A program made the translations under genes and the position numbers. From Macrostomum lignano (lineage: Eukaryota), in assembly GCA_002269645.1 (NCBI GenBank), contig NIVC01002017.1, positions 62,001 through 126,000 on the forward strand: a stretch of DNA of 64,000 nt, in the 5' to 3' direction. The notes under the pieces were generated by a model that was not told where the DNA came from, did no database searches, and saw only the letters and a list, made by a program, of their open reading frames with translations. Positions 9,580 through 42,200 of the stretch are shown piece by piece. The number at the start of each line of letters is the position of its first letter. The first letter of the stretch is position 1.

Positions 9580-11606
<2,027 letters not shown>

Positions 11607-12654: not shown

Positions 12655-15600
12655 TCACTTCTTTCCTTTATTATTGCTCTTGTTTTTCTTTTTCTTGCCG
12701 CCGGGCGTGAAGCCGGTGACATATTTCTTAGAAATCTGATAGTCCTCCGTGAGCAGCCGGTACAGGTAAGCCAGCTGGTCGCCTTGCACCGACACCACCT
12801 CGCCGGAGCCTCCGCCGGTGGGCGCCGACTGTACACCCGCGCTGACTGAGAGCGCGCGCTGCACCCGTTTAGCGAACTGCGCCGCGTCCACCCCGAAGTC
12901 GGGCAGGCCGGCCAGCAGGCTCACGCACTTGTTCGACGCGCGCGACTCGACGCGCATCGATACGCGCGGAGCGGCGCCGCGCCGTTCCAGCAAGACGGCG
13001 CCGTGACAGTCCAGCACCCTGTAGCCTGGTGTCATGCAAGCCGAGCACACCTGTGAATGGGTGTTGGCTGTACTGTGAATGGGTGTTGGCTGTACTGTGA
13101 ATGGGGTGTTGGCTGTACTGTGAATGGGGTGTTGGCTGTACTGTGAATGGGGTGTTGGCTGTACTGTGAATGGGTGTTGGCTGTACTGTGAATGGTGTTG
13201 GCTGTACTGTGAATGGGGTGTTGGCTGTACTGTGAATGGGGTGTTGGCTGTACTGTGAATGGGTGTTGGCTGTACTGTGAATGGGTGTTGGCTGTACTGT
13301 GAATGGTGTTGGCTGTACTGTGAATGGGGTGTTGGCTGTACTGTGAATGGGTGTCGGCTGTACTGTGAATGGGGTGTTGGCTGTACTGTGAATGGGTGTT
13401 GGCTGTACTGTGAATGGGTGTTGGCTGTACTGTGAATGGGGTGTTGGCTGTACTGTGAATGGGTGTTGGCTGTACTGTGAATGGTGTTGGCTGTACTGTG
13501 AATGGTGTTGGCTGTACTGTGAATGGTGTTGGCTGTACTGTGAATGGGTGTTGGCTGTACTGTGAATGGGTCAGATCAGAGAATCAAGCGAATACCTGAA
13601 ACAGCCGCTCCCAGGGCAGCGAGTCCTCCAGCACAGGCCGGCCGCACTGGCTGGCCAGACGGCTCAGCAAAGCGTCCAGGGTGACCTCGCCCGGCCGGCC
13701 TGCCATCTGCGGGCGTTGCATTCGGTGCGACTGGTGCATCATCCCCCATCCTCCAGCTGCCACCCCCTCCCCGATCCTCCAGCTGCCATCCCCTCCCCGA
13801 TCCTTCAGCTGCCACCCCCTCTTTGATCCATCAGCTGCCACCTCCTCCTCGATCCTCCAGCTGCCATCCCCTCCCCGATCCTCCAGCAGCCACCCCCTCT
13901 TTGATCCATCAGTTGCCACCCCTCACCGATCCTTCAGCAGCCATCCCCTCCCCGATCCTTCAGCTGCCGTCCCCCGATCCGTCCCCCTCTATTTACACAA
14001 ATTCGCACATAATATCCGTTCAAGCTACTTATATGAAAGAAGACATCAGTAGCATATCCCCAGCCACTCACCTGCAATCCCTCAGCCTTAGCGTACTCCG
14101 TAATCAACTGTCGGACCTGTTTGCCAGTCAAGCAGCTGCCTTTGCAGTGGCCCCAACGTTTGAACAGCTCCCCGCTGCTGGCCGTGACGAACAGGACGTC
14201 CTCGATGGTCAGCGGGCCTTCGCCAGCAGCGCCGGAGCTGGCGGCACCAGCAGCCGCCGTCGACGCCGATGCAGCAGCCGGATCAACGTAGGTGAGCGAA
14301 GGCTGAAGTTCCCCCTGCAACAGCGGGTGTCGCCAGTTGATTGACACAACCGACATGACGCCCTTATCGTTGTTGAGCTCCAACAGACCTTCGTCTTTCA
14401 TTGCTTGCACAAATGCGCCAAACTTCTTATAGCTGGTAGCCTTGAGATTTAGCGGGCTGCCGGACGAATACCTGGACATGTAGTTGGCTAGCAGGGAGCT
14501 GCACAGTATTGGCAAGTCTTTGTCGTGGATCTTTTGTAACAAAGAGTGCAATAGGCAGTTCAACAGGTGCCGATCTGCGGACTGAGTGGTGGCATAGTTG
14601 GTCAATTTTTTCTAGCCAAGTTCTTTTCTCTTTAACAATTTTTACACTCCACTGAATCTCCCACCAAGGGATTTTTTCCACTCCACTGAATCTCCCACCA
14701 AGGGATTTTTTCGACCTACTGAATCTCCCATCAAGGGATTTTTTACACTCCACTGAATCTCCCATCAAGGGATTTTTTACACTCCACTGAATCTCCCACC
14801 AAGGGATTTTTTACACTCCACTGAATCTCCCATCAAGGGATTTTTACACTCCATTGAATCTCCCATCAAGGGATTTTTACAATCCACTGAATCTCCCATC
14901 AAGGGATTTTTTCGACCCACTGAATCTCACATCAAGGGATTTTCACAATCCACTGAATCTCACATCAAGGGATTTTCAAATCCACTGAATCTCCCATCAA
15001 GGGATTTTTACAATCCACAGAATCTCCCATCAAGGGATTTGAAACTAAAAAACTCATTAAATATCCCACAAATCGAGTTTTAACACCTCCAAACGCACCT
15101 CTACAGCGGCCTCCGCATCGCTCTCGCCGGAGTCCTCGTCGAACTGCTCGTTAGGTTTGTTACAGCTCGAGTCCACGGACGCCGCGCCCATCTCTTCGGA
15201 CAGTTGCGCCACCTTGACTTCAGCTTCTTCTTCTACAGCAGCGGCAGCAACGGCAGCGTCGGCAGTCGTGGGGCCGACACTCTGGTCTCCGCGCAGCCAC
15301 AGCTGATCGCCGATCACGTGATCAACCAGTACGGCCCTGCCCCGGCCTCCGCTCTTTGCCAGCTCGGCCGCGGTGGCCGCCGCCCGGCCAACAGCCACAA
15401 ACTGGCCAGCAAGCCGCAGGCAGCACGGAGCGCCGCGAGCTAACGAATCCGGCATCGGCGCCACCAAGCCCGGCGCCATCAGATCGGCGCCGTTCTGCAG
15501 CACCGACAACAGGCCGGAAGCGGCGTCAACGCACGCGCCATTAGACATAAGCGGAGCGCGCCACAAGGCGTAGACAGTGGGGCGGAGGCCTTCACTAAAA

Positions 15601-15851
15601 TTGTACAGTATTGGCTGGCCGGCTGCAAAGTACACGAAGCCCGTCTGGTCCGTGTGCGCCACAATCTTAGATTTGAACAGGTCGCACTTCCGGTTGCCAC
15701 CGAGCAGGCGAATTTCCGCCTCGTCGCCTCCGGAAATTGCGAAAGCGTCTGGGTAGCAACGGCGAAGCTCGTCGAGCAGCTGCCGGCGCTCAGTGGATTT
15801 CAGCTTGGCGTGCGATTTGACGCGGAAGGGCTTGTGAAATAGACCGGGCAT
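12655..15851 (-). CDS. EIF2D: Translation initiation/recycling factor eIF2D (ligatin): PUA + SWIB-like + SUI1. Exons 15851-15099, ~14611-14072 (5' boundary uncertain), 13706-13596, 13050-12655
   Basis: N-terminus MPGLFHKPFRVKSHAKLKSTERR; PUA region NGADLMAPG..DHVIGDQLW; DLPILCSSLLANYM..LNLKATSYKKF; SUI1 RASNKCVSLLAGLPDFGVD..VQGDQ; phase-0 GT..AG junctions. Confidence 0.92.
13051..13570. repeat. 21-23-bp array in eIF2D intron 3 (CTGTGAATGG(G)(G)TGTTGGCTGTA), abutting the splice acceptor
   Basis: About 24 units; on the sense strand each unit ends CCATTCACAG. Confidence 0.95.
13740..13985. repeat. ~26-bp C-rich repeat in eIF2D intron 2
   Basis: Units like GATCCTCCAGCTGCCATCCCCTCCCC. Confidence 0.85.
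14630..15040. repeat. ~33-35-bp repeat in eIF2D intron 1
   Basis: Units like CCACTGAATCTCCCATCAAGGGATTTTTTACACT. Confidence 0.9.
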
Positions 15852-15899
15852 TGTTGGGCTGTGGTTGCTGCAATTGTTATCAAATTGGGAATTTACCCA

Positions 15900-17075
15900 G
15901 CAATCAAGACTCTCTCCTTAGCAACGCAGATTCTACCTTGGCAACCAAGATTTTCTTCTTAGCAACGCAGATTCTACCTTAGCAACCAAGACTCTCTCCT
16001 TAACAACGCATATTCTACATTAGCAGCTCTCTTTGGCAACGCAGATTCTACCATAGCAACTGAGACTCTCTCCTTAGCAACGCAGATTCTACCTTAGCAA
16101 CCAAGACTCGCCTTAACAACGCATATTCTACATTAGCAACTCTCTTTAGCAACGCAGATTCTACCATAGCAACCAAGACTCTCTCCTTAATAACGCATAT
16201 TCTACATTAGCAACTCTCTTTAGCAACGCAGATTCTACCATAGCAACCAAGACTCTCTCCTTAATAACGCATATTCTACATTAGCAACTCTCTTTAGCAA
16301 CGCAGATTCTACCATAGCAACCAAGACTCTCTCCTTAATAACGCATATTCTACATTAGCAACTCTCTTTAGCAACGCAGATTCTACCATAGCAACCAAGA
16401 CTCTCTCCTTAATAACGCATATTCTACATTAGCAACTCTCTTTGGCAACGCAGATTCTACCATAGCAACTGAGACTCTCTCCTTAATAACGCATATTCTA
16501 CATTAGCAACTCTCTTTGGCAACGCAGATTCTACCATAGCAACTGAGACTCTCTCCTTAATAACGCATATTCTACATTAGCAACTCTCTTTGGCAACGCA
16601 GATTCTACCATAGCAACTGAGACTCTCTCCTTAATAACGCATATTCTACATTAGCAACTCTCTTTGGCAACGCAGATTCTACCATAGCAACTGAGACTCT
16701 CTCCTTAATAACGCATATTCTACATTAGCAACTCTCTTTGGCAACGCAGATTCTACCATAGCAACTGAGACTCTCTCCTTAATAACGCAGATTCTACCTT
16801 AGCAACCAAGACTCTCTCCTTAATAACGCATATTCTACATTAGCAACTCTCTTTGGCAACGCAGATTCTACCATAGCAACTGAGACTCTCTCCTTAATAA
16901 CGCAGATTCTACCTTAGCAACCAAGACTCTCTCCTTAATAACGCATATTCTACATTAGCAACTCTCTTTAGCAACGCAGATACTACCATAGCAACCAAGA
17001 CTCTCTCCCTAGCAACGCATATTCTACCTTAACAACCAAGACTATCTCCGTAGCAACGCAGAATTTTCCTTACAA
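15900..17075. repeat. 74-bp composite minisatellite upstream of the eIF2D ATG, probably in a 5'-UTR intron
   Basis: 74-nt period (e.g. 16371 to 16445) built from related GCAAC/CTCTC subunits; candidate acceptor TTGCAG at ~15868-15873 and donor GTGAGT near 17216-17221 on the minus strand. Confidence 0.88.
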
Positions 17076-17563
17076 ACAATATTTGCTACATCAGCAAGCA
17101 ATACAAAACCCTGGGAACTTGGACCCTACCTAGGAAACAACTTATATCGATAGACCTCACATTAGCAAGCCCGAAATTCCAAATAGAGCCAAAAAAGAAA
17201 CAAAACAGAAAAATTACTCACTGATAATAGATCGGTCAGAAAGGTTTGTTAAAGTCTGACTTAGATAAAATTTAAATTAAACCAGTCAAAAACTTGCGCA
17301 CCAAAAAGTTCTCCCAGTAAAGTGTACAATTCGCAAAGGGGTGAGGTAACGAAAAAAATGATTGAATTGCAGGACGTCATTGACAACCGTTAAGAAATTA
17401 ACAATGCAAAAACATTACTACTTTTTTGTCTAAATTTAAGTAGTAACAACGAATGTTTCTTGTGGCAAAAAAATCGCTAAAATATGCTAAAATGCAATGC
17501 AGTTAAGCATTTGCAGAATAATATTTTCCACTATTCACTAAAACTAGAAGACAGAACTGCTGC

Positions 17564-18599
17564 CTACTCTTCAACAGGCGGAGACCTGTGCGAATACCAG
17601 GACAGGAACACGTCCCACACGGCGGCCAGGCCTGTCACAAAGAACAGCCGCAGCCTAGTTGGCAGCCAATAGAAATTCACGGCCTGAGCGGCCGGCCACA
17701 CGCAGGCTTCGACAGCCAGGGCGGTGGGAAATTTATCCCGACAGTAATACAGGCTGTCGCGCCAGGACCGGCCTTCCATCAGAGGCAGGGCGGTGAAGAA
17801 GGCCAGGTTGAAGCAGACGCCAAACACCGCCTGGTCCAGCAGAATCTGCAGTGAAGAGGGTGGCGGGGAGCCTGAGGAATCAGGGAGGGACATATCGGGG
17901 AGCCTGAGGAATCAGGAAGGGGACATAGCGGGGAGCCTGAGGAATCAGGGAGGGGACATGGCGGGGAGCCTGAGGAATCAGGGAGGGGACATAGCGGGGA
18001 GCCTGAGGAATCAGGGAGGGGACATAGCGGGGAGCCTGAGGAATCAGGGAGGGGACATAGCGGGGAGCCTGAGGAATCAGGGAGGGGACATAGCGGGGAG
18101 CCTGAGGAATCAGGGAGGGGACATAGCGGGGAGCCTGAGGAATCAGGGAGGGGACATAGCGGGGAGCCTGAGGAATCAGAAAGGGGACATAGCGGGGAGC
18201 CTGAGGAATCAGGGAGGGGACATAGCGGGGAGCCTGAGGAATCAGGAAGAACTACGGACAGAAGCCAAACGCTACCTTGGCCAGCATAGTTCCAGGTGTC
18301 CGTCCAGGCAACCGCCTGTCCAGCGTAAGGTACCAATAGTGAGCCGGCACGGCCCCAATCAGGCCAATCAGGCCCAGCCTGCCGGAGCGGCGCCAATCGT
18401 GCGCCCTAATGGCGCTGCTACCGCCAGCCAGAGTTTCAATTCGTTGAGCGGCGCAATCGGCCAGAACGAAGAGGCTGCCAGCTGTGGCGCAGTTCGTTGC
18501 TAAGAGGTAACGCGGCGAATAGGCCGCTGCCAGGAGGCGCTTGGCTGCTAGCTGCCAGGACTGCAATGGTGGGATTGCATTGTTTGAGGTATTTCCCAT
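17564..18599 (-). CDS. MPV17L2: Mpv17/PMP22-family membrane protein, MPV17L2-like, copy 1; exons 18599-18276, 17845-17564
   Basis: YLLATNCATAGSLFVLAD, HYWYLTLDRRLP, K|ILLDQ, VWPAAQAVNF, WDVFLSW; phase-0 GT..AG intron. Confidence 0.88.
17866..18248. repeat. 33-bp repeat in the MPV17L2 intron (GGGGACATAGCGGGGAGCCTGAGGAATCAGGGA)
   Basis: About 11-12 near-identical units; source of the GGDIAGSLRNQ ORF. Confidence 0.95.
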
Positions 18600-18679
18600 T
18601 GGAATTTTTTGTTTCTGGGATTAGTGCCAAAGTATTTGGGATTCGGACGGTTGGGATCTGGGCTTATTGTGTCATATCC

Positions 18680-19440
18680 ATGGGAATTTGGAAGGTTGGA
18701 ATAGTGGCAGATGGGGATTTGGAAGGTTGGAATAGTGGCAGATCGGAATTTGGAAGGTTGGAATAGTGGCAGATGGGGATTTGGAAGGTTGGAATAGTGG
18801 CAGATCGGAATTTGGAAGGTTGGAATAGTGGCAGATGGGGATTTGGAAGGTTGGAATAGTGGCAGATGGGAATTTGGAAGGTTGGGATAGTGGCAGATGG
18901 GGATTTGGAAGGTTGGGATAGTGGCAGATGGGAATTTGGAAGGTTGGAATAGTGGCAGATAGGAATTTGGAAGGTTGGAATAGTGGCAGATGGGGATTTG
19001 GAAGGTTGGGATAATGGCAGATGGGAATTTAGAAGGTTGGAATAGTGGCAGATGGGGATTTGGAAGGTTGGAATAGTGGCAGATGGGGATTTGGAAGGTT
19101 GGGATAGTGGCAGATAGGTATTTGGAAGGTTGCAATAGTGGTAGATGGGGATTTGGAAGGTTGGGATAGTGGTGGATAGGGATTAAATGAATGGATGGGA
19201 TAATGGCATGGCAGATAGAGATTGAATGGTTGGGATAATGGCAGATACTGATTAAATGAATGGTTGGGATAGTGGCATGGGCATGGCAGATAGAGATTTG
19301 AATGGTTGGGATAATGGCAGATATTGATTAAATAAATGGTTGGGATAATGGCAAATAGGGTTTTGGATAATTAGGAAAGTGGTAGATAGGGATTTAGAAG
19401 GTTGGGATAATGAAGATAGGGATCTAGGCAGTTGGAATAG
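18680..19440. repeat. 31-bp repeat upstream of the MPV17L2 ATG (GAAGGTTGGAATAGTGGCAGATGGGGATTTG)
   Basis: Visible units, decaying after ~19150. Confidence 0.9.
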
Positions 19441-21559
19441 GGCCTATATGAATATAAATATTAGCTTTATATCAAATAATGAATATACTATAAACTTTAT
19501 ATAGAAGTAAAAACTAAATAATTATATTATTAATATTAGCATTATACAAGCTAAGGGAAATATTCTGCTAGCATCCAAAAAGTAATTAATTATTATCCCT
19601 CATATAGTTACATAATTGAGAAGTCAAGTAATTATCTTACCAATGGGATGCACATAGCTATTTTCTTATAATATTCTTCTGAATTTTTTTAATGCAATCA
19701 TTAAAATTGGTTATAGAGTCTCTTGAATGCATGCACACTGAAAAAATAGAAAATTAGCTTTATAAGTTTTGCAGCTGATCTTACTCTTTCTTTTAAAAAG
19801 TGGTTTCATCTGTTGGCAGGCAAAAAGGAGGTAGACAAAAGGACTGCAAACCCCAATTTATGCATATTTCATATCTTTTGATGAAGAAATGGTAAAATTG
19901 CTTGAACTGTTTGGGAGATATAATAGATTGCATATATATACAAAGGCTTTTTTCATTTTTAGTATATTATTTTAGTATATTGGAATTTTTAATGCTGACT
20001 TACTAATACTATAGTCTAAGAAGAAATTTAGCAACAAACATACACATAAACAAATAAATATTAATAGACTTTTAGTATATTTAAGGCTATAAGCTTAAAA
20101 GTATTTATAATCAAAAATGCAATTAAATTTTAAAATCTAAGTTTATGTAGGCCCCTAATTAGTTAGCTTGAATTATGAATTCATATAATTTACAACAATT
20201 TATATTTTTTATAATCAAATTAATATTGTTATACTGTTATATTAAACTTTTTCATAATTGTTTAATGTTTATAAACTAATATAGAATAATATTTTGTATA
20301 TAACTATAAAGTATTAAAGTAAAATAGCATTAGTTTATGCTTTAGACTTATGCTTTAGCATTAGATAAAATGCCTAAGGCAAAAAATAAAATGATATATG
20401 TAACAATGAGTAATGAGAAAGGATTATGTTGTATTTCTACTTAAATTATAATAAATTATTACAAGCCTCTTTCATTTTATTGCATGTCTTATTGTTGATA
20501 CTACTTTACTAATCAGTAATCACTAATCAATTTAAAATTTACCTAGACCTAGGCTAGTTCTTTCAGGATGACATTATTCGACTTAATAAATAGGCCATCT
20601 AGCTGGCTAGCCAACTGATAGCAATGCCAAGCTTACAATTAAAGATGTAGACTTTTAGAAAGTACTTTAAACATATGATTTGTAATTCGAATCTTCGACG
20701 CAATACAGGCGAAATAGCGAAAATACTAGTAGGGCTTCGGCCCCCAGCTGGACACAGACGGGCGCGCGCGCTCGCCGCGATAATTACCAAACGACGACTT
20801 TGAATATGCGCGATATAGATGATTAAACTGACGACCGCCGATCATTGCTTACAATTGAAGCTAACAATGTGTCTTTGTTCGGATATTGGACCAAAATTCT
20901 CTTATAAATTGCGACACTTTCTGGATAAACAAACACATCCATAGGGTGTTTAAGTTACTTAATTGCTCTGGGAAATTTTTCGTTTATAACAGATATAACC
21001 AAACAAACGAGCGCATGGACAAACAACATTTATATAGAGTGGTTCTCTATAAAAATATTTTCTCTGCGAACTTTTTCGTTTATAACAGCTAGCCTACACC
21101 AGCTTCTAGGTCAGGTAAGTCCCCGACTGCTACTGGTACCATATGTAAACCATGCAGTTAATACATGTCTGTTGGTGGAATGATCGGCGAGTTATAATCG
21201 GCCCCCAATAGTTCAGCCTATACTAATTAGGAGTGTGTCTGGACACGTTGCAGTGCAGGATGAAAAACAAGACCTGCCAAAAGGCGGATGAACTCATGAG
21301 TCAACGGCTATCCAGCTAGAGATGATGTCTCAACAACATTAACTGAGGCAGCAAGCTATGGCAAACTATACTGCCGTCATCTTGACCCACATTACCAAAA
21401 AGCTGATGAGGGTTCGAATGATGAGCGCGAAACAGAGATTACGACCACGTTGAGATCTCTGAAGTTCAGTGCGGGGCTTTGTTGAGGACTGTGGTGCCCG
21501 AAATGCCATTCTCGCTGTTCGATTCCTGAGTGAAAGAGCTATATTGAAATGAAGAAGAA

Positions 21560-27103
<5,544 letters not shown>

Positions 27104-27328
27104 TCCTTGTGCTCTTTTACCTTGGGGTTGCGATAGGGGCCTCGCGGCCTATTCGCGGCGCCTGCGCCCCCCGTCAGTAGTAAGTAAGTAAGTAAGTTGG
27201 CCATATTATGAGAAAGGGAGGAATGGAAGATTAAAGGAAGCTGGAGATCGTGGAAGACAGGCAGCAAGCTTTCTAAAGAACCTGTCTCAATGAATGAACA
27301 TGAACAGCTTGGAAATGACTTCACGCCC

Positions 27329-27330
<2 letters not shown>

Positions 27331-27416
<86 letters not shown>
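27331..27416. repeat. (GA)n microsatellite; shorter paralogous copy at 32659-32735
   Basis: Directly visible. Confidence 0.95.
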
Positions 27417-27419
<3 letters not shown>

Positions 27420-28186
27420 GGAGAGCCTAAACTTGCAGGCGTTGGAAAGCATCCGACATATGGTGCATGTACATTTATACATACATTGGCAATTTGGCAC
27501 TGCTTTGGTGGCACGCGCGCATGAATATGCATATAAATTCATGTCAACAAAGTCATTTAAAGGGATGGATTTCGATTTTTTTCTGAAGTAAACTGCTCAC
27601 TCATTATATTAGCGGTTTGCTCAAAAGAACAGTTGTTGACAAAAGTATCTCGAAATTTATAAAACGCGAGCTGGCGTATTAGCTAGGGAATCTAGGGGAT
27701 CTAGGGGATTTCGCTGTTTATTCAAAGAATGCAAAGCTTTTTGAGATATTGAATATTTAAAGATTTCAATTGCAAGCTTCATTAACCAGGTTAATTGTAA
27801 CCCTGAACCTTAGACCCGGAAAGTTTATTGGTAGACTTGAAGAGTTTTAAGACTGTATGTGATACAACTGCAAACAAAAACATTTACAACTTCCTCCTAT
27901 ATATGGCCGCAACGAACGCCCATGTCAGCCAATCTTCAGTGCCGAAGTGCCTCCTTGAGAAAAAAAATCGAGAGATCTTTGCGTTCCTCTGCAAGTGTCT
28001 CTGAGTCAATGCTCAACAAAGATAATTGCGCCTGATACTAACTTACTAAATCCATGCATCCTAAGAATCCAATCTCTTTCGTTCACGCCAAAGAAGCTTG
28101 CAACTGAATCCATCGATTTCAACACTCCGATCCCTTATAACGCCTAGCATTCTATTGTAACTCGGTTCAGTTAGAGTTGCTCATCG

Positions 28187-28921
28187 TTAATTATTGCAGC
28201 CGTCGTGGACGCACACAGCCAAACCTCTGTTACAGCTCGAGTCCACGGACGCCGCGCCCATCTCTTCGGACAGTTGCGCCACCTTGACTTCAGCTTCTTC
28301 TTCTACAGCAGCGGCAGCAACGGCAGCGTCGGCAGTCGTGGGGCCGACACTCTGGTCTCCGCGCAGCCACAGCTGATCGCCGATCACGTGATCAACCAGT
28401 ACGGCCCTGCCCCGGCCTCCGCTCTTTGCCAGCTCGGCCGCGGTGGCCGCCGCCCGGCCAACAGCCACAAACTGGCCAGCAAGCCGCAGGCAGCACGGAG
28501 CGCCGCGAGCTAACGAATCCGGCATCGGCGCCACCAAGCCCGGCGCCATCAGATCGGCGCCGTTCTGCAGCACCGACAACAGGCCGGAAGCGGCGTCAAC
28601 GCACGCGCCATTAGACATAAGCGGAGCGCGCCACAAGGCGTAGACAGTGGGGCGGAGGCCTTCACTAAAATTGTACAGTATTGGCTGGCCGGCTGCAAAG
28701 TACACGAAGCCCGTCTGGTCCGTGTGCGCCACAATCTTAGATTTGAACAGGTCGCACTTCCGGTTGCCACCGAGCAGGCGAATTTCCGCCTCGTCGCCTC
28801 CGGAAATTGCGAAAGCGTCTGGGTAGCAACGGCGAAGCTCGTCGAGCAGCTGCCGGCGCTCAGTGGATTTCAGCTTGGCGTGCGATTTGACGCGGAAGGG
28901 CTTGTGAAATAGACCGGGCAT
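28187..28921 (-). CDS. Chimeric truncated eIF2D: 231 aa of eIF2D exon 1 plus 13 aa (RGLAVCVHDGCNN) from the neighbouring Cys-rich gene
   Basis: Same protein sequence as the 15851 ORF up to SVDSSCN, then in frame with the C-terminus of the 33505 gene; junction at 28228-28229. Confidence 0.85.
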   Translation of the reverse strand: MPGLFHKPFRVKSHAKLKSTERRQLLDELRRCYPDAFAISGGDEAEIRLLGGNRKCDLFKSKIVAHTDQTGFVYFAAGQPILYNFSEGLRPTVYALWRAPLMSNGACVDAASGLLSVLQNGADLMAPGLVAPMPDSLARGAPCCLRLAGQFVAVGRAAATAAELAKSGGRGRAVLVDHVIGDQLWLRGDQSVGPTTADAAVAAAAVEEEAEVKVAQLSEEMGAASVDSSCNRGLAVCVHDGCNN

Positions 28922-29805
28922 TGTTGGGCTGTGGTTGCATCAATTGTTATCAAATTGGGAATTTACCCAGCAATCAAGACTCTCTCCTTAGCAACGCAGA
29001 TTCTACCTTAGCAACCAAGACTCTCGCCTTAACAACGCATATTCTATATTAGCAACTCTCTTTAGCAACGCAGATTCTACCTTAGCAACCGAGACTCTCT
29101 CCTTAATAACGCATATTCTACATTAGCAACTCTCTTTAGCAACGCAGATTCTACCATAGCAACCGAGACTCTCTCCTTAATAACGCATATTCTACATTAG
29201 CAACTCTCTTTAGCAACGCAGATACTACCATAGCAACCGAGACTCTCTCCCTAGCAACGCATATTCTACCTTAACAACCAAGACTCTCTCCGTAGCAACG
29301 CAGAATTTTCCTTACAAACAATATTTGCTACATCAGCAAGCAATACAAAACCCTGGGAACTTGGACCCTACCTAGGAAACAACTTATATCGATAGACCTC
29401 ACATTAGCAAGCCCGAAATTCCAAATAGAGCCAAAAAAGAAACAAAACAGAAAAATTACTCACTGATAATAGATCGGTCAGAAAGGTTTGTTAAAGTCTG
29501 ACTTAGATAAAATTTAAATTAAACCAGTCAAAAACTTGCGCATCAAAAAGTTCTCCCAGTAAAGTGTACAATTCGCAAAGGGGTGAGGTAACGAAAAAAA
29601 TGATTGAATTGCAGGACGTCATTGACAACCGTTAAGAAATTAACAATGCAAAAACATTACTACTTTTTTGTCTAAATTTAAGTAGTAACAACGAATGTTT
29701 CTTGTGGAAAAAAAATCGCTAAAATATGCTAAAATGCAATGCAGTTAAGCATTTGCAGAATAATATTTTCCACTATTCACTAAAACTAGAAGACAGAACT
29801 GCTGC

Positions 29806-30775
29806 CTACTCTTCAACAGGCGGAGACCTGTGCGAATACCAGGACAGGAACACGTCCCACACGGCGGCCAGGCCTGTCACAAAGAACAGCCGCAGCCTAG
29901 TTGGCAGCCAATAGAAATTCACGGCCTGAGCGGCCGGCCACACGCAGGCTTCGACAGCCAGGGCGGTGGGAAATTTATCCCGACAGTAATACAGGCTGTC
30001 GCGCCAGGACCGGCCTTCCATCAGAGGCAGGGCGGTGAAGAAGGCCAGGTTGAAGCAGACGCCAAACACCGCCTGGTCCAGCAGAATCTGCAGTGAAGAG
30101 GGTGGCGGGGAGCCTGAGGAATCAGGGAGGGACATATCGGGGAGCCTGAGGAATCAGGAAGGGGACATAGCGGGGAGCCTGAGGAATCAGGGAGGGGACA
30201 TAGCGGGGAGCCTGAGGAATCAGGGAGGGGACATAGCGGGGAGCCTGAGGAATCAGGGAGGGGACATAGCGGGGAGCCTGAGGAATCAGGGAGGGGACAT
30301 AGCGGGGAGCCTGAGGAATCAGGGAGGGGACATAGCGGGGAGCCTGAGGAATCAGGGAGGGGACATAGCGGGGAGCCTGAGGAATCAGGGAGGGGACATA
30401 GCGGGGAGCCTGAGGAATCAGGAAGAACTACGGACAGAAGCCAAACGCTACCTTGGCCAGCATAGTTCCAGGTGTCCGTCCAGGCAACCGCCTGTCCAGC
30501 GTAAGGTACCAATAGTGAGCCGGCACGGCCCCAATCAGGCCAATCAGGCCCAGCCTGCCGGAGCGGCGCCAATCGTGCGCCCTAATGGCGCTGCTACCGC
30601 CAGCCAGAGTTTCAATTCGTTGAGCGGCGCAATCGGCCAGAACGAAGAGGCTGCCAGCTGTGGCGCAGTTCGTTGCTAAGAGGTAACGCGGCGAATAGGC
30701 CGCTGCCAGGAGGCGCTTGGCTGCTAGCTGCCAGGACTGCAATGGTGGGATTGCATTGTTTGAGGTATTTCCCAT
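29806..30775 (-). CDS. MPV17L2: MPV17L2-like gene, copy 2; exons 30775-30452, 30087-29806
   Basis: Translated ORFs identical to copy 1; the intron has two fewer 33-bp units. Confidence 0.85.
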
Positions 30776-31683
30776 TGGAATTTTTTGTTTCTGGGATTAG
30801 TGCCAAAGTATTTGGGATTCGGACGGTTGGGATCTGGGCTTATTGTGTCATATCCATGGGAATTTGGAAGGTTGGAATAGTGGCAGATGGGGATTTGGAA
30901 GGTTGGCGACGACGACGACGACTTTGAATATGCGCGATATAGATGATTAAACTGACGACCGCCGATCATTGCTTACAATTGAAGCTAACAATGTGTCTTT
31001 GTTCGGATATTGGACCAAAATTCTCTTATAAATTGCGACACTTTCTGGATAAACAAACACATCCATAGGGTGTTTAAGTTACTTAATTGCTCTGGGAAAT
31101 TTTTCGTTTATAACAGATATAACCAAACAAACGAGCGCATGGACAAACAACATTTATATAGAGTGGTTCTCTATAAAAATATTTTCTCTGCGAACTTTTT
31201 CGTTTATAACAGCTAGCCTACACCAGCTTCTAGGTCAGGTAAGTCCCCGACTGCTACTGGTACCATATGTAAACCATGCAGTTAATACATGTCTGTTGGT
31301 GGAATGATCGGCGAGTTATAATCGGCCCCCAATAGTTCAGCCTATACTAATTAGGAGTGTGTCTGGACACGTTGCAGTGCAGGATGAAAAACAAGACCTG
31401 CCAAAAGGCGGATGAACTCATGAGTCAACGGCTATCCAGCTAGAGATGATGTCTCAACAACATTAACTGAGGCAGCAAGCTATGGCAAACTATACTGCCG
31501 TCATCTTGACCCACATTACCAAAAAGCTGATGAGGGTTCGAATGATGAGCGCGAAACAGAGATTACGACCACGTTGAGATCTCTGAAGTTCAGTGCGGGG
31601 CTTTGTTGAGGACTGTGGTGCCCGAAATGCCATTCTCGCTGTTCGATTCCTGAGTGAAAGAGCTATATTGAAATGAAGAAGAA

Positions 31684-32650
31684 TCTGTACGTAGTTGTGT
31701 TTTATGGACTATGCAAAGGCCTTTGATAGTGTCAGACATGAAGAATTGATGAAGATGTTCGAAGAAATTTGACATTGATGGAAAAGACCTTCGAGTTCTT
31801 AGCAATCTGCATTGGAAGCAAAGCGCGGCTATAAAGATTGACTGAACTGACAAAGTTTGCGGTGACTAAGAAAGGTGTCAGGCAAGGCTTTGTCCTCTCT
31901 CCTGGTGTATTCAACCTGTACAGTAAGAAGATTCTGTGAGAGATTGGAGACCTACCAGGACTCGTCATTGGAAGACAGAACTTGACCAAAATGAGATATG
32001 CTGATGAGACAGTGCTCATTACGAAAACGGAAGAGAAGTTGCAAGAAACAGAGTGGTGCGAGCCACTGGAAAGTGAGAAGATGGGTTCAGAAGGCATTGG
32101 TTGCTACCAAACAGAAGCTTCAGTACGCAACATTACCATAAATGGTGAACATGCGAAGCAAGTTTGCAAATGTAACTATTTAGGGAGTTTAATAACTTCG
32201 GGTGGAAAATGTGAACACGGAGAATCAAACGGAGAATCAGCATGGCAAAGGATGCCTTCCATGCAGCAGATGAAAAAATCCAGACAAATGGGTAAGTCGA
32301 AGAAGTTAAGAATTCTTGTCTGCTGTCTCCCTGTTCTCACACATGGGTCGGAGTGCTCAACAATAACACCGGCAATGGAGAAAAGAATCGAGGAAGAGGA
32401 ATTGTGGTTCTCGAGGTGAATTCTCAAAGTGAGCTGGGTCAGTCACAGAGAATGAAGATGTTCTGCTGGTTGTAGAAGGAAGTTGATAGCGAAAATTCGG
32501 AGATGGTAGAGTAGATGGAGTTCTTTGGCCATATTATGAGAAAGGGAGGAATGGAAGATTAAAGGAAGCTGGAGATCGTGGAAGACAGGCAGCAAGCTTT
32601 CTAAAGAACCTGTCTCAATGAATGAACATGAACAGCTTGGAAATGACTTC
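31684..32650 (+). mobile_element. Degenerate RTE fragment, copy 2, uninterrupted (LINE empty site)
   Basis: Same sequence as 21560-22413 joined directly to the sequence that follows 27209. Confidence 0.8.
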
Positions 32651-32656
32651 ACGCCC

Positions 32657-32737
<81 letters not shown>

Positions 32738-33504
32738 GGAGAGCCTAAACTTGCAGGCGTTGGAAAGCATCCGACATATGGTGCATGTACATTTATACAT
32801 ACATTGGCAATTTGGCACTGCTTTGGTGGCACGCGCGCATGAATATGCATATAAATTCATGTCAACAAAGTCATTTAAAGGTATGGATTTCGATTTTTTT
32901 CTGAAGTAAACTGCTCACTCATTATATTAGCGGTTTGCTCAAAAGAACAGTTGTTGACAAAAGTATCTCGAAATTTATAAAACGCGAGCTGGCGTATTAG
33001 CTAGGGAATCTAGGGGATCTAGGGGATTTCGCTGTTTATTCAAAGAATGCAAAGCTTTTTGAGATATTGAATATTTAAAGATTTCAATTGCAAGCTTCAT
33101 TAACCAGGTTAATTGTAACCCTGAACCTTAGACCCGGAAAGTTTATTGGTAGACTTGAAGAGTTTTAAGACTGTATGTGATACAACTGCAAACAAAAACA
33201 TTTACAACTTCCTCCTATATATGGCCGCAACGAACGCCCATGTCAGCCAATCTTCAGTGCCGAAGTGCCTCCTTGAGAAAAAAAATCGAGAGATCTTTGC
33301 GTTCCTCTGCAAGTGTCTCTGAGTCAATGCTCAACAAAGATAATTGCGCCTGATACTAACTTACTAAATCCATGCATCCTAAGAATCCAATCTCTTTCGT
33401 TCACGCCAAAGAAGCTTGCAACTGAATCCATCGATTTCAACACTCCGATCCCTTATAACGCCTAGCATTCTATTGTAACTCGGTTCAGTTAGAGTTGCTC
33501 ATCG

Positions 33505-33862
33505 TTAATTATTGCAGCCGTCGTGGACGCACACAGCCAAACCTCTGGGCTCGTACCAGCGTCGAACCGATTCGTCCGGCGGCTGTCTCGACTGGACGCA
33601 GCCGCGCATGACTCGGCCAGCGCGAACCGGCCAGTTGTACAGCTGCTTGACGGCCGATTCGCCCAGGCGGGTCAGGCGGCCGCGAAAGCAGAATGGCTTG
33701 TCAGCGTCGCAGCGCTCGAGGCTGTCACGCAGGACGCCGCTCGCCTGGTCAAGTCGGGTCACGAAGCAGCGCCTGCTGAAGGCGGCGTCAACTTCGAAGG
33801 CGACCTGCAGGCTCAGAAGCAGAGCGACAGCAGCCGCCGAGACCGGGGACTTTAGGAGAGCC
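33505..33862 (-). CDS. Terminal exon of a small secreted Cys-rich protein (Ly6/uPAR three-finger-like C-x4-C-N end); start exon not located
   Basis: Extending the 33762 ORF upstream gives ALLKSPVSAAAVALLLSLQVAFEVDA (signal-like), then 6 Cys ending CVHDGCNN; pyrimidine-rich acceptor TCTCCACTCAG at 33863. Confidence 0.55.
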
Positions 33863-34694
33863 CTGAGTGGAGATGGAGAAAAATGAGGAATGAAGAAAGG
33901 TTTCTGAATATGAGGAATATTGCCTGTCTCTCGATAACTTACTTAGCCATGTTAGACTGACTCAATGCTGTCAAAATTTGGAACAGAAATAATTTAGTGT
34001 AGCTGAAAATCTCTCAGCAGATTCTTCACACAATGCAGAGAGAGCAAAGAAACTCTTGAAATCCGGCAACCCTTATATGCATTTTTGTGTTCGGGGGTGG
34101 GAAAGGCTGGCTGGCAGGACTGGGCTAATGTCAGAGCATTGCGTGGGCGACTTGAGCTTCCGCAATGCTCTTGCAGTGCTCTGCAAGCCCGTCCCCAACC
34201 AGTAGGGAAGAAAATGATTTTATTAAAAAAAAGTCAACTCAGACAAGCCCAGCTTCTATCAGCAGTTTTTTTAATGCAGGAAGCTGCTGGCTGGTTCAGC
34301 CGCCGCCCCCACAGATGGGCAGATGCACGCAAGCCGCACTATAAACCATTAATCAATTTCCTCAGACACTATTGATATGGCAGAATCAATAGAAAAAAAT
34401 AAATTGATTTCCAGTTATTTTAAAGTTAAATACCGCTATTGCAGCCAGCCAGTTAGAGGAAAACTGCTGAACCGAATCCTCTTGAGTGATGCCTATGGGA
34501 AATCTGAGCAGCGGCGACGCGGGTGCGTTCACGATGCTGGCGAAGAAGTCGCGCAATTCATTCCTGCGCTCCTCCGGGGTGTCGCCGGCCAGGTTTAGCG
34601 CCGGCTGTTATTTAAAAATCACTAAAAACCGTTTAGAAAACCTTCTGAACCTTTTGAAGCAAAAATAATAGAACTGTGGCCCTTGTCTTTTCAG

Positions 34695-36292: not shown

Positions 36293-39200
36293 CTAGTCCT
36301 CGTACTCAGTCGTGCTGGTATAGGTCTCCATGCGAGTGATGTACACGCTACCGTCAGCCTCCTTCTTGCACTGGCACTTCTTCACCGATCCGTGCACCTT
36401 ACAGCTGAAATCGGTGCCGGAGCTGGACGCCCTCACGCATTTGCCATTGGTACTCAGGCAGTCGGAGCGGTAGGGTCGGCTGGAGCTCGGGTCCTTGCTG
36501 CACTTAAAGTGGAAGCACATGCTGTCGGCCTTGCTCACCCAGGACTGTCCGGGCTTGTACTTGTGGCTAGTGTAGGGATCAATGCAGTAGTGCTCAATGT
36601 GTGACGTTGTCTCCCAGTGGCCATGGTCAGAGTCACCACTGGTCTCTGAGCTGGTGCTTGTGCTGGTGCTGGTGTGTGTGCTGGTGCTAGAATCCGTGGT
36701 TGTCTCATCGGTGCCAGAGCTCGAGCTGCCACCATGAGGGCGAACAAGTCCCGTGCCAACGCACGAGTAGGTGCGAACGAATCGGCAGCCGCAGCCTACA
36801 ATTGGTTAGCCAAGACTATTCACTATTCATAGTGCTAGAATGGAAACTTATAAAGCTATTACAAGTAAAATGTATAACCATACTACATGTAGCTCTGCAG
36901 GAAGACACAAAGATTCCAATTAGCGTGACTTACGGCCAGACATTACTCGAGACAGCTCTCTGGCGTTGCGAGGCAGAACTCCGAAGCTGAAGCGTCCAGC
37001 AACCGCGCCCTGATGAACGACATCACCTGGATTGTAAAGAAGCAATAGTCAACGCATGGCCACTAACAAATAACGAAAATCAATCGGCAATATCGATAAT
37101 TATACAGTACGTACTTTTGACGCCAATTTCATTCCGAGTTTGGAGAAGCGACCTCGAGTCTTCCGGGCGATGGCTTTGTACGCGCCGCCACTATGTCCGC
37201 ACAGATTTCCGGAGGCGATGATGAAGAAGCGGATGTTCTTGGAAGCCAGCAATTTGGCCACAGATTTGTGCATGCGCGAGTCCTTGGCGGAGGCGTCGGT
37301 GAACAGGAACAGGACCGAGTTTCGGTCGGCGGCAGCAGCGGCATCGCGAACTCCATGCATAGACATCTCAGGACAGTCGCCACCCCCGTGAGGACGGACG
37401 CGTCTCAGGAACGCGAGTGCCTGGTGGGCGTTCCTTGTCTTGAGCACGTTCCGTTTGTAGGGATCTCCGTACGTACCAAGAACGTAGTTATTGAAGCGCT
37501 TGTTCGCCCTGATGATGCTTTGAATGTGGTTCCTGACGGCTTTGATGACGCGGCCCATGCTGCCGGTGTCATCGACAACGAAGATCAGCGATCCTCGCTT
37601 TCCAGGTCGGGGAGCAACAGGCTTGCATGAGCAGACCTTCTTCTTGGTGGAGATCCTGCGGCCACCTCGAGGGCAGCGCTTAGGTTTGGGACGGACTGGT
37701 GGTCGGACAGGTGGGCGGACGGGAGGCCGAACCCCTCCGGTTCCAACGCACTTGTGAGTACGGACAAAGCGGCATCCGCATCCTGAAGAGAAAAAAGTCT
37801 AAGATGGAACTAGATGGCTTAAGCTTTCCTTAAATCTCGGGTCAAGAAAACTCGTTTTAGGGATGGGTAGACGCTAGGCTGACAAGTGTACCCCGAAGAG
37901 TTACTAAATAATAGAAATAGCTACACTATGCTACATGTATATACATTTATCGTTTGGGCTTTAATGGGAACATTGAGGGGTTAAGCTACGATACTGCTTT
38001 ACCAGTAGGGTTGAGGCCGAATTATCTTAAAAATTGCCAACAGATACACGACCAGCTAACACAATTCGGGCAGCCAAGCAAAATATCCTGGAAATCTTGA
38101 AAAGAGAGATGATCGATGATCACTTACGGCCAGACATCACTCGAGACAGCTCTCTGGCGTTGCGAGGCAGAACTCCGAAGCTGAAGCGTCCAGCAACCGC
38201 GCCCCTGATGAACGACATCACCTGGATTGTAAAGAAGCAATAGTCAACGCATGGCCACTAACAAATAACGAAAATCAATCGGCAATATCGATAATTATAC
38301 AGTACGTACTTTTGACGCCAATTTCATTCCGAGTTTGGAGAAGCGACCTCGAGTCTTCCGGGCGATGGCTTTGTACGCGCCGCCACTATGTCCGCACAGA
38401 TTTCCGGAGGCGATGATGAAGAAGCGGATGTTCTTGGAAGCCAGCAATTTGGCCACAGATTTGTGCATGCGCGAGTCCTTGGCGGAGGCGTCGGTGAACA
38501 GGAACAGGACCGAGTTTCGGTCGGCGGCAGCAGCGGCATCGCGAACTCCATGCATAGACATCTCAGGACAGTCGCCACCCCCGTGAGGACGGACGCGTCT
38601 CAGGAACGCGAGTGCCTGGTGGGCGTTCCTTGTCTTGAGCACGTTACGCTTGTAGGGATCTCCGTACGTACCAAGAACGTAGTTATTGAAGCGCTTGTTA
38701 GCCCTGATGATGCCTTGAATGTGGTTCCTGACGGCTTTGATGACGCGGCCCATGCTGCCGGTGTCATCGACAACGAAGATCAGCGATCCTCGCTTTCCAG
38801 GTCGGGGAGCAACAGGCTTGCATGAGCAGACCTTCTTCTTGGTGGAGATCCTGCGGCCACCTCGAGGGCAGCGCTTAGGTTTGGGACGGACTGGTGGTCG
38901 GACAGGTGGGCGGACGGGAGGCCGAACCCCTCCGGTTCCAACGCACTTGTGAGTACGGACAAAGCGGCATCCGCATCCTGAAGAGAAAAAAGTCTAAGAT
39001 GGAACTAGATGGCTTAAGCTTTCCTTAAATCTCGGGTCAAGAAAACTCGTTTTAGGGATGGGTAGACGCTAGGCTGACAAGTGTACCCCGAAGAGTTACT
39101 AAATAATAGAAATAGCTACACTATGCTACATGTATATACATTTATCGTTTGGGCTTTAATGGGAACATTGAGGGGTTAAGCTACGATACTGCTTTACCAG

Positions 39201-42200
39201 TAGGGTTGAGGCCGAATTATCTTAAAAATTGCCAACAGATACACGACCAGCTAACACAATTCGGGCAGCCAAGCAAAATATCCTGGAAATCTTGAAAAGA
39301 GAGATGATCGATGATCACTTACGGCCAGACATCACTCGAGACAGCTCTCTGGCGTTGCGAGGCAGAACTCCGAAGCTGAAGCGTCCAGCAACCGCGCCCT
39401 TGATGAACGACATCACCTGGATTGTAAAGAAGCAATAGTCAACGCATGGCCACTAACAAATAACGAAAATCAATCGGCAATATCGATAATTATACAGTAC
39501 GTACTTTTGACGCCAATTTCATTCCGAGTTTGGAGAAGCGACCTCGAGTCTTCCGGGCGATGGCTTTGTACGCGCCGCCACTATGTCCGCACAGATTTCC
39601 GGAGGCGATGATGAAGAAGCGGATGTTCTTGGAAGCCAGCAATTTGGCCACAGATTTGTGCATGCGCGAGTCCTTGGCGGAGGCGTCGGTGAACAGGAAC
39701 AGGACCGAGTTTCGGTCGGCGGCAGCAGCGGCATCGCGAACTCCATGCATAGACATCTCAGGACAGTCGCCACCCCCGTGAGGACGGACGCGTCTCAGGA
39801 ACGCGAGTGCCTGGTGGGCGTTCCTTGTCTTGAGCACGTTCCGTTGTAGGGATCTCCGTACGTACCAAGAACGTAGTTATTGAAGCGCTTGTTCGCCCTG
39901 ATGATGCTTTGAATGTGGTTCCTGACGGCTTTGATGACGCGGCCCATGCTGCCGGTGTCATCGACAACGAAGATCAGCGATCCTCGCTTTCCAGGTCGGG
40001 GAGCAACAGGCTTGCATGAGCAGACCTTCTTCTTGGTGGAGATCCTGCGGCCACCTCGAGGGCAGCGCTTAGGTTTGGGACGGACTGGTGGTCGGACAGG
40101 TGGGCGGACGGGAGGCCGAACCCCTCCGGTTCCAACGCACTTGTGAGTACGGACAAAGCGGCATCCGCATCCTGAAGAGAAAAAAGTCTAAGATGGAACT
40201 AGATGGCTTAAGCTTTCCTTAAATCTCGGGTCAAGAAAACTCGTTTTAGGGATGGGTAGACGCTAGGCTGACAAGTGTACCCCGAAGAGTTACTAAATAA
40301 TAGAAATAGCTACACTATGCTACATGTATATACATTTATCTTTGGCTTTAATGGGAACATTGAGGGGTTAAGCTACGATACTGCTTTACCAGTAGGGTTG
40401 AGGCCGAATTATCTTAAAAATTGCCAACAGATACACGACCAGCTAACACAATTCGGGCAGCCAAGCAAAATATCCTGGAAATCTTGAAAAGAGAGATGAT
40501 CGATGATCACTTACGGCCAGACATCACTCGAGACAGCTCTCTGGCGTTGCGAGGCAGAACTCCGAAGCTGAAGCGTCCAGCAACCGCGCCCTTGATGAAC
40601 GACATCACCTGGATTGTAAAGAAGCAATAGTCAACGCATGGCCACTAACAAATAACGAAAATCAATCGGCAATATCGATAATTATACAGTACGTACTTTT
40701 GACGCCAATTTCATTCCGAGTTTGGAGAAGCGACCTCGAGTCTTCCGGGCGATGGCTTTGTACGCGCCGCCACTATGTCCGCACAGATTTCCGGAGGCGA
40801 TGATGAAGAAGCGGATGTTCTTGGAAGCCAGCAATTTGGCCACAGATTTGTGCATGCGCGAGTCCTTGGCGGAGGCGTCGGTGAACAGGAACAGGACCGA
40901 GTTTCGGTCGGCGGCAGCAGCGGCATCGCGAACTCCATGCATAGACATCTCAGGACAGTCGCCACCCCCGTGAGGACGGACGCGTCTCAGGAACGCGAGT
41001 GCCTGGTGGGCGTTCCTTGTCTTGAGCACGTTCCGTTGTAGGGATCTCCGTACGTACCAAGAACGTAGTTATTGAAGCGCTTGTTCGCCCTGATGATGCT
41101 TGAATGTGGTTCCTGACGGCTTTGATGACGCGGCCCATGCTGCCGGTGTCATCGACAACGAAGATCAGCGATCCTCGCTTTCCAGGTCGGGGAGCAACAG
41201 GCTTGCATGAGCAGACCTTCTTCTTGGTGGAGATCCTGCGGCCACCTCGAGGGCAGCGCTTAGGTTTGGGACGGACTGGTGGTCGGACAGGTGGGCGGAC
41301 GGGAGGCCGAACCCCTCCGGTTCCAACGCACTTGTGAGTACGGACAAAGCGGCATCCGCATCCTGAAGAGAAAAAAGTCTAAGATGGAACTAGATGGCTT
41401 AAGCTTTCCTTAAATCTCGGGTCAAGAAAACTCGTTTTAGGGATGGGTAGACGCTAGGCTGACAAGTGTACCCCGAAGAGTTACTAAATAATAGAAATAG
41501 CTACACTATGCTACATGTATATACATTTATCTTTTGAGCTTTAATGGGAACATTGAGGGGTTAAGCTACGATACTGCTTTACCAGTAGGGTTGAGGCCGA
41601 ATTATCTTAAAAATTGCCAACAGATACACGACCAGCTAACACAATTCGGGCAGCCAAGCAAAATATCCTGGAAATCTTGAAAAGAGAGATGATCGATGAT
41701 CACTTACGGCCAGACATCACTCGAGACAGCTCTCTGGCGTTGCGAGGCAGAACTCCGAAGCTGAAGCGTCCAGCAACCGCGCCCTTGATGAACGACATCA
41801 CCTGGATTGTAAAGAAGCAATAGTCAACGCATGGCCACTAACAAATAACGAAAATCAATCGGCAATATCGATAATTATACAGTACGTACTTTTGACGCCA
41901 ATTTCATTCCGAGTTTGGAGAAGCGACCTCGAGTCTTCCGGGCGATGGCTTTGTACGCGCCGCCACTATGTCCGCACAGATTTCCGGAGGCGATGATGAA
42001 GAAGCGGATGTTCTTGGAAGCCAGCAATTTGGCCACAGATTTGTGCATGCGCGAGTCCTTGGCGGAGGCGTCGGTGAACAGGAACAGGACCGAGTTTCGG
42101 TCGGCGGCAGCAGCGGCATCGCGAACTCCATGCATAGACATCTCAGGACAGTCGCCACCCCCGTGAGGACGGACGCGTCTCAGGAACGCGAGTGCCTGGT

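Follow-up and report, generated by a model that had tools for sequence, protein, structure and literature searches.

Tandem duplication is a standard and already known route to chimeric genes, and in Drosophila about 10% of the tandem duplications that capture genes yield parallel chimeras (PMC4069613). The proteins of interest at the locus described here belong to the eIF2D and MCT-1·DENR systems. In the latter, a zinc-finger peptide of DENR binds a hydrophobic surface that Leu82, Leu170 and Trp175 form on MCT-1. eIF2D does not conserve the cysteines of DENR, the interface has been reported to be specific to DENR and MCT-1, and the two proteins are mutually required for stability and activity (PMC6013234).

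In this study, we describe a chimeric open reading frame (ORF) from the flatworm Macrostomum lignano that joins the beginning of an eIF2D gene to the end of a small cysteine-rich gene. It lies within a window of 64,000 nucleotides, the whole stretch of DNA that was analysed, in which both parent genes are also found and have been left whole after the duplication. The cut separates the MCT-1-like half of eIF2D from its DENR-like half (domain scheme of PMC11260288). A sequence-only reading of the locus had proposed a chimera born by duplication; mapping of the complete tandem structure by self-BLAST supports this origin.

Results

Parent genes and the chimeric ORF

Judged by its alignment and domain content, the parent eIF2D is a genuine full-length, orthodox member of its family. 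Residues 4-579 align with residues 1-581 of human eIF2D (E=1.2e-69), and the Pfam domains Pre-PUA, PUA, WH_eIF2D and SUI1 are all present. Exon 1 (15851..15099) comprises 251 codons and ends at the donor GAG/gtgcgt, where the slash marks the boundary. Introns 1 and 3 of this gene (14638-15040 and 13051-13571) consist largely of minisatellites with periods of ~22 bp and ~33 bp. The second parent encodes a protein with a hydrophobic, signal-like segment at its N-terminus, for which no Pfam family was matched. Near-identical database proteins in an exhaustive HMMER search are restricted to two M. lignano UniProt models, A0A1I8FH69 and A0A1I8FK88, which are ridden with frameshifts and are both of the parent type rather than the chimera.

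The chimera is identical to exon 1 of the parent eIF2D at 694 of 694 nucleotides through codon 231 (15158-15851 compared with 28228-28921), and departs from it after this codon, 60 nt ahead of the donor. What follows is RGLAVCVHDGCNN and TAA, and then ~1 kb, all of it from the 3' end of the cysteine-rich gene. The fusion point connects codon 231 of eIF2D with codon 109 of the 121-aa cysteine-rich gene, both on the minus strand; the chance expectation of an in-frame join is, as a prior, 1 in 3. At the breakpoints the parents read TGTAACA/AACC and GAGCCCA/GAGG and the chimera reads TGTAAC/AGAGGT, so written from the junction letters TGTAAC/AGAGGTTTG. The DNA sequence that spans the junction is TGTAACAGAGGTTTG, and the junction-diagnostic sequence, a target for proteomics or ribosome profiling, is SSCNRGLAVCVHDGCNN. 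A 41-mer across the junction occurs once in the window, which is free of any N.

Downstream of the stop, the AATAAA signal is reached after 361 nt, and the 3' UTR region differs from its counterpart at 32525-33547 by one substitution and by the length of a (GA)n tract. Earlier inspection of the letters had described 231 residues of eIF2D exon 1, cut before the donor and fused in frame to 13 codons, the stop and the 3' region of the cysteine-rich gene with its AATAAA, as well as an undamaged ORF. All of this is borne out, with the 244-aa frame free of differences from the parent in its coding part. The accompanying claim that the upstream region was duplicated together with the exon holds as well: ~4.6 kb has been copied, up to 33547. 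The copies are not identical, as minisatellite copy numbers and a dinucleotide at positions -19/-18 differ.

Table 1 Coordinates of the features of the locus, given as positions in the window.
Feature	Position	Strand	Details
Chimeric ORF	28187..28921	minus	244 codons + stop; eIF2D residues 1-231, then RGLAVCVHDGCNN (ORF list, sequence)
eIF2D-derived part, codons 1-231	28229..28921	minus	matches parent exon 1 (15159-15851) without any difference
Last 13 codons + stop	28187..28228	minus	native frame of the cysteine-rich gene; identical to 33505-33546
Duplication junction	28228..28229	minus	2-bp microhomology (CA); BLAST blocks overlap by 2 bp
3' UTR from the cysteine-rich gene	27824..28186	minus	AATAAA at 27829-27824 and again at 27722
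Chimera-only upstream ATG	28938..28940	minus	parent ttgCAGcaacc, chimera ttgATGcaacc; changed bases 28939-28940
74-bp minisatellite	28969..29304		4 units, ~50 bp upstream of the chimera start (TRF)
Parent eIF2D, intact	12655..15851	minus	4 exons: 15851-15099, 14581-14072, 13706 or 13730-13596, 13050-12655; 589-597 aa
Parent cysteine-rich gene, intact	33505..33951	minus	2 exons, 121 aa, 6 Cys, ends CVHDGCNN
Mpv17/PMP22-like gene, fully duplicated	29806..30775	minus	twin at 17564-18599; Pfam PF04117, E=7.7e-18
Unit 1	15158..28229		13.1 kb; two additional inserts, 18731-20790 and 22414-27196
Unit 2	28228..33547		compact, 5.3 kb
Collinear block	15158-16214 = 28228-29278		direct
Collinear block	16732-18183 = 28982-30425		direct
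Collinear block	17928-18730 = 30105-30906		direct
Collinear block	20791-22413 = 30915-32537		direct
Collinear block	27197-28229 = 32525-33547		direct; 98.9%
Non-LTR retrotransposon, full-length	22414..27196	plus	4,783 bp, unit 1 only, (TAAG)n tail

Architecture of the duplicated segment

The two units are adjacent and in direct orientation, and self-BLAST resolves them into collinear blocks of 94.7-99.94% identity (Table 1). Unit 1 is the longer of the two because it carries two inserts. The larger is a non-LTR retrotransposon bounded by a perfect target-site duplication of 13 bp, TTGGCCATATTAT, at 22401-22413 and 27197-27209, while the empty site is whole in unit 2 at 32525-32537. The element is apparently intact: besides an ORF1-like ORF of 283 aa, it has an ORF2 (1155 aa) for endonuclease, RT and RNase H. 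It runs towards the chimera and terminates ~600 bp beyond the poly(A) signal of the latter. As it occupies one of two units that are 99.9% identical, it must have inserted very recently and may remain active today. Its presence in unit 1 together with the empty site in unit 2 indicates that the units are distinct DNA that has been evolving since the duplication.

The second insert, ~2 kb at 18731-20790, is found in unit 1 and not in unit 2, and either an insertion or a deletion could account for it; it opens with an expanded 31-bp minisatellite and has (CGA)n at its bounds. Repeat lengths differ as well. The 74-bp minisatellite upstream of the eIF2D start has ~13 copies at the parent (15899-17062) compared with 4 at the chimera (TRF), a 33-bp repeat in the intron of the Mpv17-like gene has 11.7 copies (17863-18246) compared with 9.7 (30105-30422), and the (GA)n tract has 42.5 copies in one unit and 37.5 in the other. 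Minisatellite copy numbers have shifted fast between two young units, and the abundance of minisatellites in the window agrees with the published picture of the M. lignano genome (PMC5730564).

Between the two parents, the duplication has copied a complete Mpv17/PMP22-like gene, the exon ORFs of which are identical between both copies. This gene lies on the same strand as the chimera and 885 bp upstream of it, with no AATAAA or ATTAAA between the two, and the spacing fits the repeat-adjusted operon distance that has been used for M. lignano (PMC8629364). The Mpv17-like gene and the eIF2D-type gene may form an operon-like arrangement.

Elsewhere in the window, two further minus-strand genes, at 5022-7364 and 9580-11606, encode a Sugar_tr sugar/MFS transporter, the introns of which are packed with minisatellites, and a cathepsin L-like cysteine protease with an I29 propeptide and a Peptidase_C1 domain. 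A tandem array at 36928-43689 consists of ~5.7 copies of a 1,194-bp unit at 97-99% identity; further copies, which have diverged, lie at 45280-45996 and 46561-47071. In each unit, a minus-strand ORF of 152 aa encodes a von Willebrand factor A domain (PF25106, E=1.7e-28). The array could reflect tandem amplification of an exon or gene, or else a VWA protein of highly repetitive structure. An Rfam scan of the whole window gave no matches.

The 5' end and expected expression

Unit 2 runs on into the original upstream sequence, so that the upstream context of eIF2D passes in full to the chimera. With this context and a ready-made 3' UTR containing a poly(A) signal, the chimera is probably transcribed. 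An origin of its 5' end as a retrocopy of an SL-spliced mRNA, suggested by a new ATG at the place expected for the ATG of the spliced leader, was also considered and is ruled out: the sequence upstream is genomic outron and minisatellite rather than SL, and the duplication extends ~4.6 kb further. The exact chimera protein is missing from a collection of 15 billion sequences, with no contig recorded for it, for the parent exon-1 ORF or for one of the parent-type UniProt models, which is weak evidence given that such collections cover M. lignano poorly.

The dinucleotide at -19/-18 is the sole difference in 743 bp around the start (parent 15868-15873 compared with chimera 28938-28943). The SL acceptor motif of M. 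lignano is [T/C]TNCAG (PMC8629364), and the TTGCAG found 18 nt upstream of the parent start fits this motif, while the chimera has TTGATG instead. The upstream ATG created in this way opens a 26-codon uORF that is out of frame and overlaps the chimera start (translation MQPQPNNARSISQALPRQIARQAEIH). As far as the letters can tell, this change may lower expression of the chimera. On the other hand, a second AG (ccacAG/CCCAAC), 7 nt upstream of the start, is kept in both copies, and one of the M. lignano UniProt models of the parent type starts exactly at PNNAR (CCC AAC AAT...), right after it. This second AG may be the acceptor that is really used.

These features bear most directly on the possibility that the duplication is real and the gene was dead on arrival, either through loss of the acceptor combined with the overlapping uORF or through convergent transcription from the retrotransposon downstream. 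The exchange of TTGCAG for TTGATG and the uORF both point in this direction, as does the presence of an ATG in every unit of the upstream minisatellite, which means that the mature 5' end must lie very near the start. However, the second AG is intact at both copies and coincides with the start of the UniProt model, and a parent spliced at TTGCAG would bear the same handicap, since the terminal ATG of the SL (PMC8629364) would then occupy the same position and frame as the upstream ATG of the chimera and open the same 26-codon uORF. We regard a gene silenced from birth as unlikely.

Recent origin of the duplication

Five substitution events, affecting six nucleotides, and a single 1-bp indel distinguish the two units over ~4.6 kb; the resulting divergence of ~0.12% was computed on unique sequence only, with minisatellites left out. 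By comparison, SNP divergence among the three subgenomes of M. lignano amounts to 1.4-2.4%, and the inbred DV1 line shows negligible heterozygosity within each subgenome (PMC10733133). The tandem duplication thus took place long after that of the whole genome; gene conversion between the units could make it look younger than its true age. A divergence of ~0.12% predicts less than one change across 735 nt, and the intact ORF therefore provides no evidence of constraint; with zero coding differences, dN/dS of the chimera cannot be computed.

The same numbers help to decide whether the animal carries a chimeric ORF at all, or whether alleles or haplovariants of one locus were laid end to end during assembly. 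M. lignano assemblies are known to carry wrongly collapsed or expanded paralogs (PMC10733133), redundancy amounts to 180 Mb in Mlig_3_7 (PMC5730564), and the units differ chiefly in large indels and repeat lengths, as haplovariants do. Against such an artefact, the join falls within two coding exons at a clean 2-bp microhomology, is free of gaps and offers an assembler no shared repeat to loop through. In substitutions, moreover, the units are 0.12% apart, less than a tenth of the divergence between the subgenomes. An origin from two alleles is likewise not easy to reconcile with negligible heterozygosity within a subgenome of an inbred line (PMC10733133). Subgenome haplovariants joined by the assembler are ruled out as the main explanation by the contrast between 0.12% and 1.4-2.4% together with the microhomology junction, and an assembly artefact of any kind appears quite improbable. 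The direct tandem duplication is, in all likelihood, real.

Predicted product and its possible partners

The chimera retains two Pfam domains, Pre-PUA (PF17832 at 5-100, E=1.2e-11) and PUA (PF01472 at 118-180, E=6e-6). Winged-helix, SWIB/MDM2 and SUI1 domains are absent from it, WH_eIF2D and SUI1 being contributed by exons 2-4 of the parent only. Among solved structures, its closest relative by phmmer is human eIF2D, residues 1-202 (5OA3, E=4.6e-26), with MCT-1 (3R90) at E=0.7, and the top matches of an exhaustive HMMER search are mostly eIF2Ds of 550-620 aa.

An AF2 model built on an alignment of 68 sequences reaches a pLDDT of 87.6 and is confident over residues 1-190, while a model from the single sequence was unusable (pLDDT 38). 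Residues 196-220 are modelled as an acidic helix, and the tail at 221-244, which includes the 13 borrowed residues and has a pLDDT of 52-56, is probably disordered. In Foldseek, the model ranks eIF2D on the 40S subunit first (5OA3, E=4e-16), followed by MCT-1 in its free form (3R90) and on the 40S subunit with DENR (5VYC), with E-values from 3e-12 to 1e-10 and TM scores, normalised to MCT-1, of 0.72-0.76. According to the model, the chimera holds a complete pre-PUA+PUA module, and its predicted fold spans all of MCT-1. The description of the product as an MCT-1-like half in the sequence-only reading is thus apt for architecture and predicted fold, but fails on ancestry: the relationships among sequences (E=4.6e-26 compared with 0.7) place it with eIF2D and not among the orthologues of MCT-1, and the label "de novo MCT-1" is overstated.

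The MCT-1 residues contacted by DENR, L82, L170 and W175, align to V93, I180 and W185 of the chimera in an alignment whose human MCT-1 sequence was verified to be identical to 5ONS. The match is conservative, but the same is found in full-length eIF2Ds, which do not use DENR, and it therefore weighs neither for nor against pairing with DENR. No DENR sequence is present in the window. The mutual dependence of MCT-1 and DENR (PMC6013234) speaks against an active lone PUA module, and dominant-negative competition by the chimera at the 40S site is, on mechanistic grounds, conceivable.

A functional new gene, whose product would either pair with DENR as a stand-alone MCT-1-like protein or compete in a dominant-negative way with eIF2D and MCT-1 for the 40S subunit and so alter recycling and reinitiation, would fit the complete MCT-1-type predicted fold, the DENR-contact triad (present as in eIF2Ds generally), the entire upstream context, the poly(A) signal, and the lack of an intron past the stop, owing to which nonsense-mediated decay is not expected, but we consider it very improbable in view of a divergence that has left no time for selection to mark the sequence, an ancestry in eIF2D rather than MCT-1, a zinc-finger interface specific to DENR and MCT-1 with cysteines not conserved in eIF2D, the instability and inactivity of MCT-1 without DENR (PMC6013234), and the gain of an upstream ATG with loss of the acceptor motif in the chimera copy. 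It is just as doubtful that an expressed, free N-terminal module of eIF2D binds in trans to the C-terminal half of that protein, or else to DENR or the 40S subunit, and measurably alters 40S recycling or uORF reinitiation.

Discussion

We conclude, with a probability of roughly 0.7, that the chimera at this locus is real, arose very recently by tandem duplication, is probably transcribed and bears no sign of a selected function. The direct duplication, ~5.3 kb of the Macrostomum lignano genome, broke within eIF2D exon 1 on one side and, on the other, within the final exon of a parallel gene for a small, putatively secreted cysteine-rich protein, and the ends were joined via 2 bp of microhomology. 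It kept both parents, copied the Mpv17-like gene between them and made a single-exon chimera at the junction. The architecture of the duplication, its junction and age, and the domain content and fold of the product are shown by the analysis; transcription, translation and any effect on the ribosome are inferred. If translated, the product would begin with a soluble pre-PUA+PUA module, the half of eIF2D that binds the 40S subunit and tRNA, and continue with an acidic helix and a disordered tail of 13 residues. It would be devoid of the WH, SWIB and SUI1 parts needed for the release of tRNA and mRNA. Most likely, the chimera arose as a by-product that is neutral or mildly harmful, and it either does nothing or competes weakly at most for the 40S site of MCT-1 and eIF2D, without having been shaped by selection.

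The locus offers a fully resolved example of the birth of a chimera, with breakpoints, microhomology, dating by a transposable element and both parents in one window. Its value is mainly one of annotation, where it should be flagged as a young chimera that is neither a second eIF2D nor an MCT-1 gene. Were the product expressed and active, it would amount to a natural experiment on the MCT-1-like half of eIF2D working or interfering alone. In that case it would also bear on the divergence of the eIF2D and MCT-1·DENR systems, as a newborn 'split' mirroring an ancient relationship.

Comparison with known systems

Like eIF2D (ligatin, Tma64), to the human form of which it is ~35% identical over 191 columns of a structural alignment, the chimera includes the DUF1947/pre-PUA domain, the PUA domain and a portion of the linker. 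Unlike eIF2D, which acts through the eIF1-like site near the P site, it would be unable to fill this site, as judged from the domain roles assigned in PMC11260288. The resemblance to MCT-1 (MCTS1, Tma20) lies in the plan of a stand-alone DUF1947+PUA protein with a core of similar size and a similar predicted fold (TM 0.72-0.76). The chimera is not an orthologue of MCT-1, however: the two share 18-21% identity (phmmer E=0.7), the chimera has ~55 additional C-terminal residues, and Phe104, which contacts tRNA in MCT-1, is Val in the chimera. Another new MCT-1-type coding gene that arose by duplication, MCTS2, is a mammalian retrocopy of MCTS1, and is neither a truncation of eIF2D nor a product of tandem segmental duplication.

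The closest parallels are the duplication chimeras of Drosophila yakuba, D. simulans and D. melanogaster described by Rogers et al. (PMC4069613, PMC5460883). The M. lignano chimera differs from these in its host, a neopolyploid flatworm with SL trans-splicing, and in a 3' partner that gives only 13 codons. As in Drosophila, on the other hand, the 5' part of one gene with its promoter is joined to the 3' part and UTR of another, and the duplication is direct, tandem and very young, with intact parents and copies that were later modified, here by a transposable element and by changes in repeat length.
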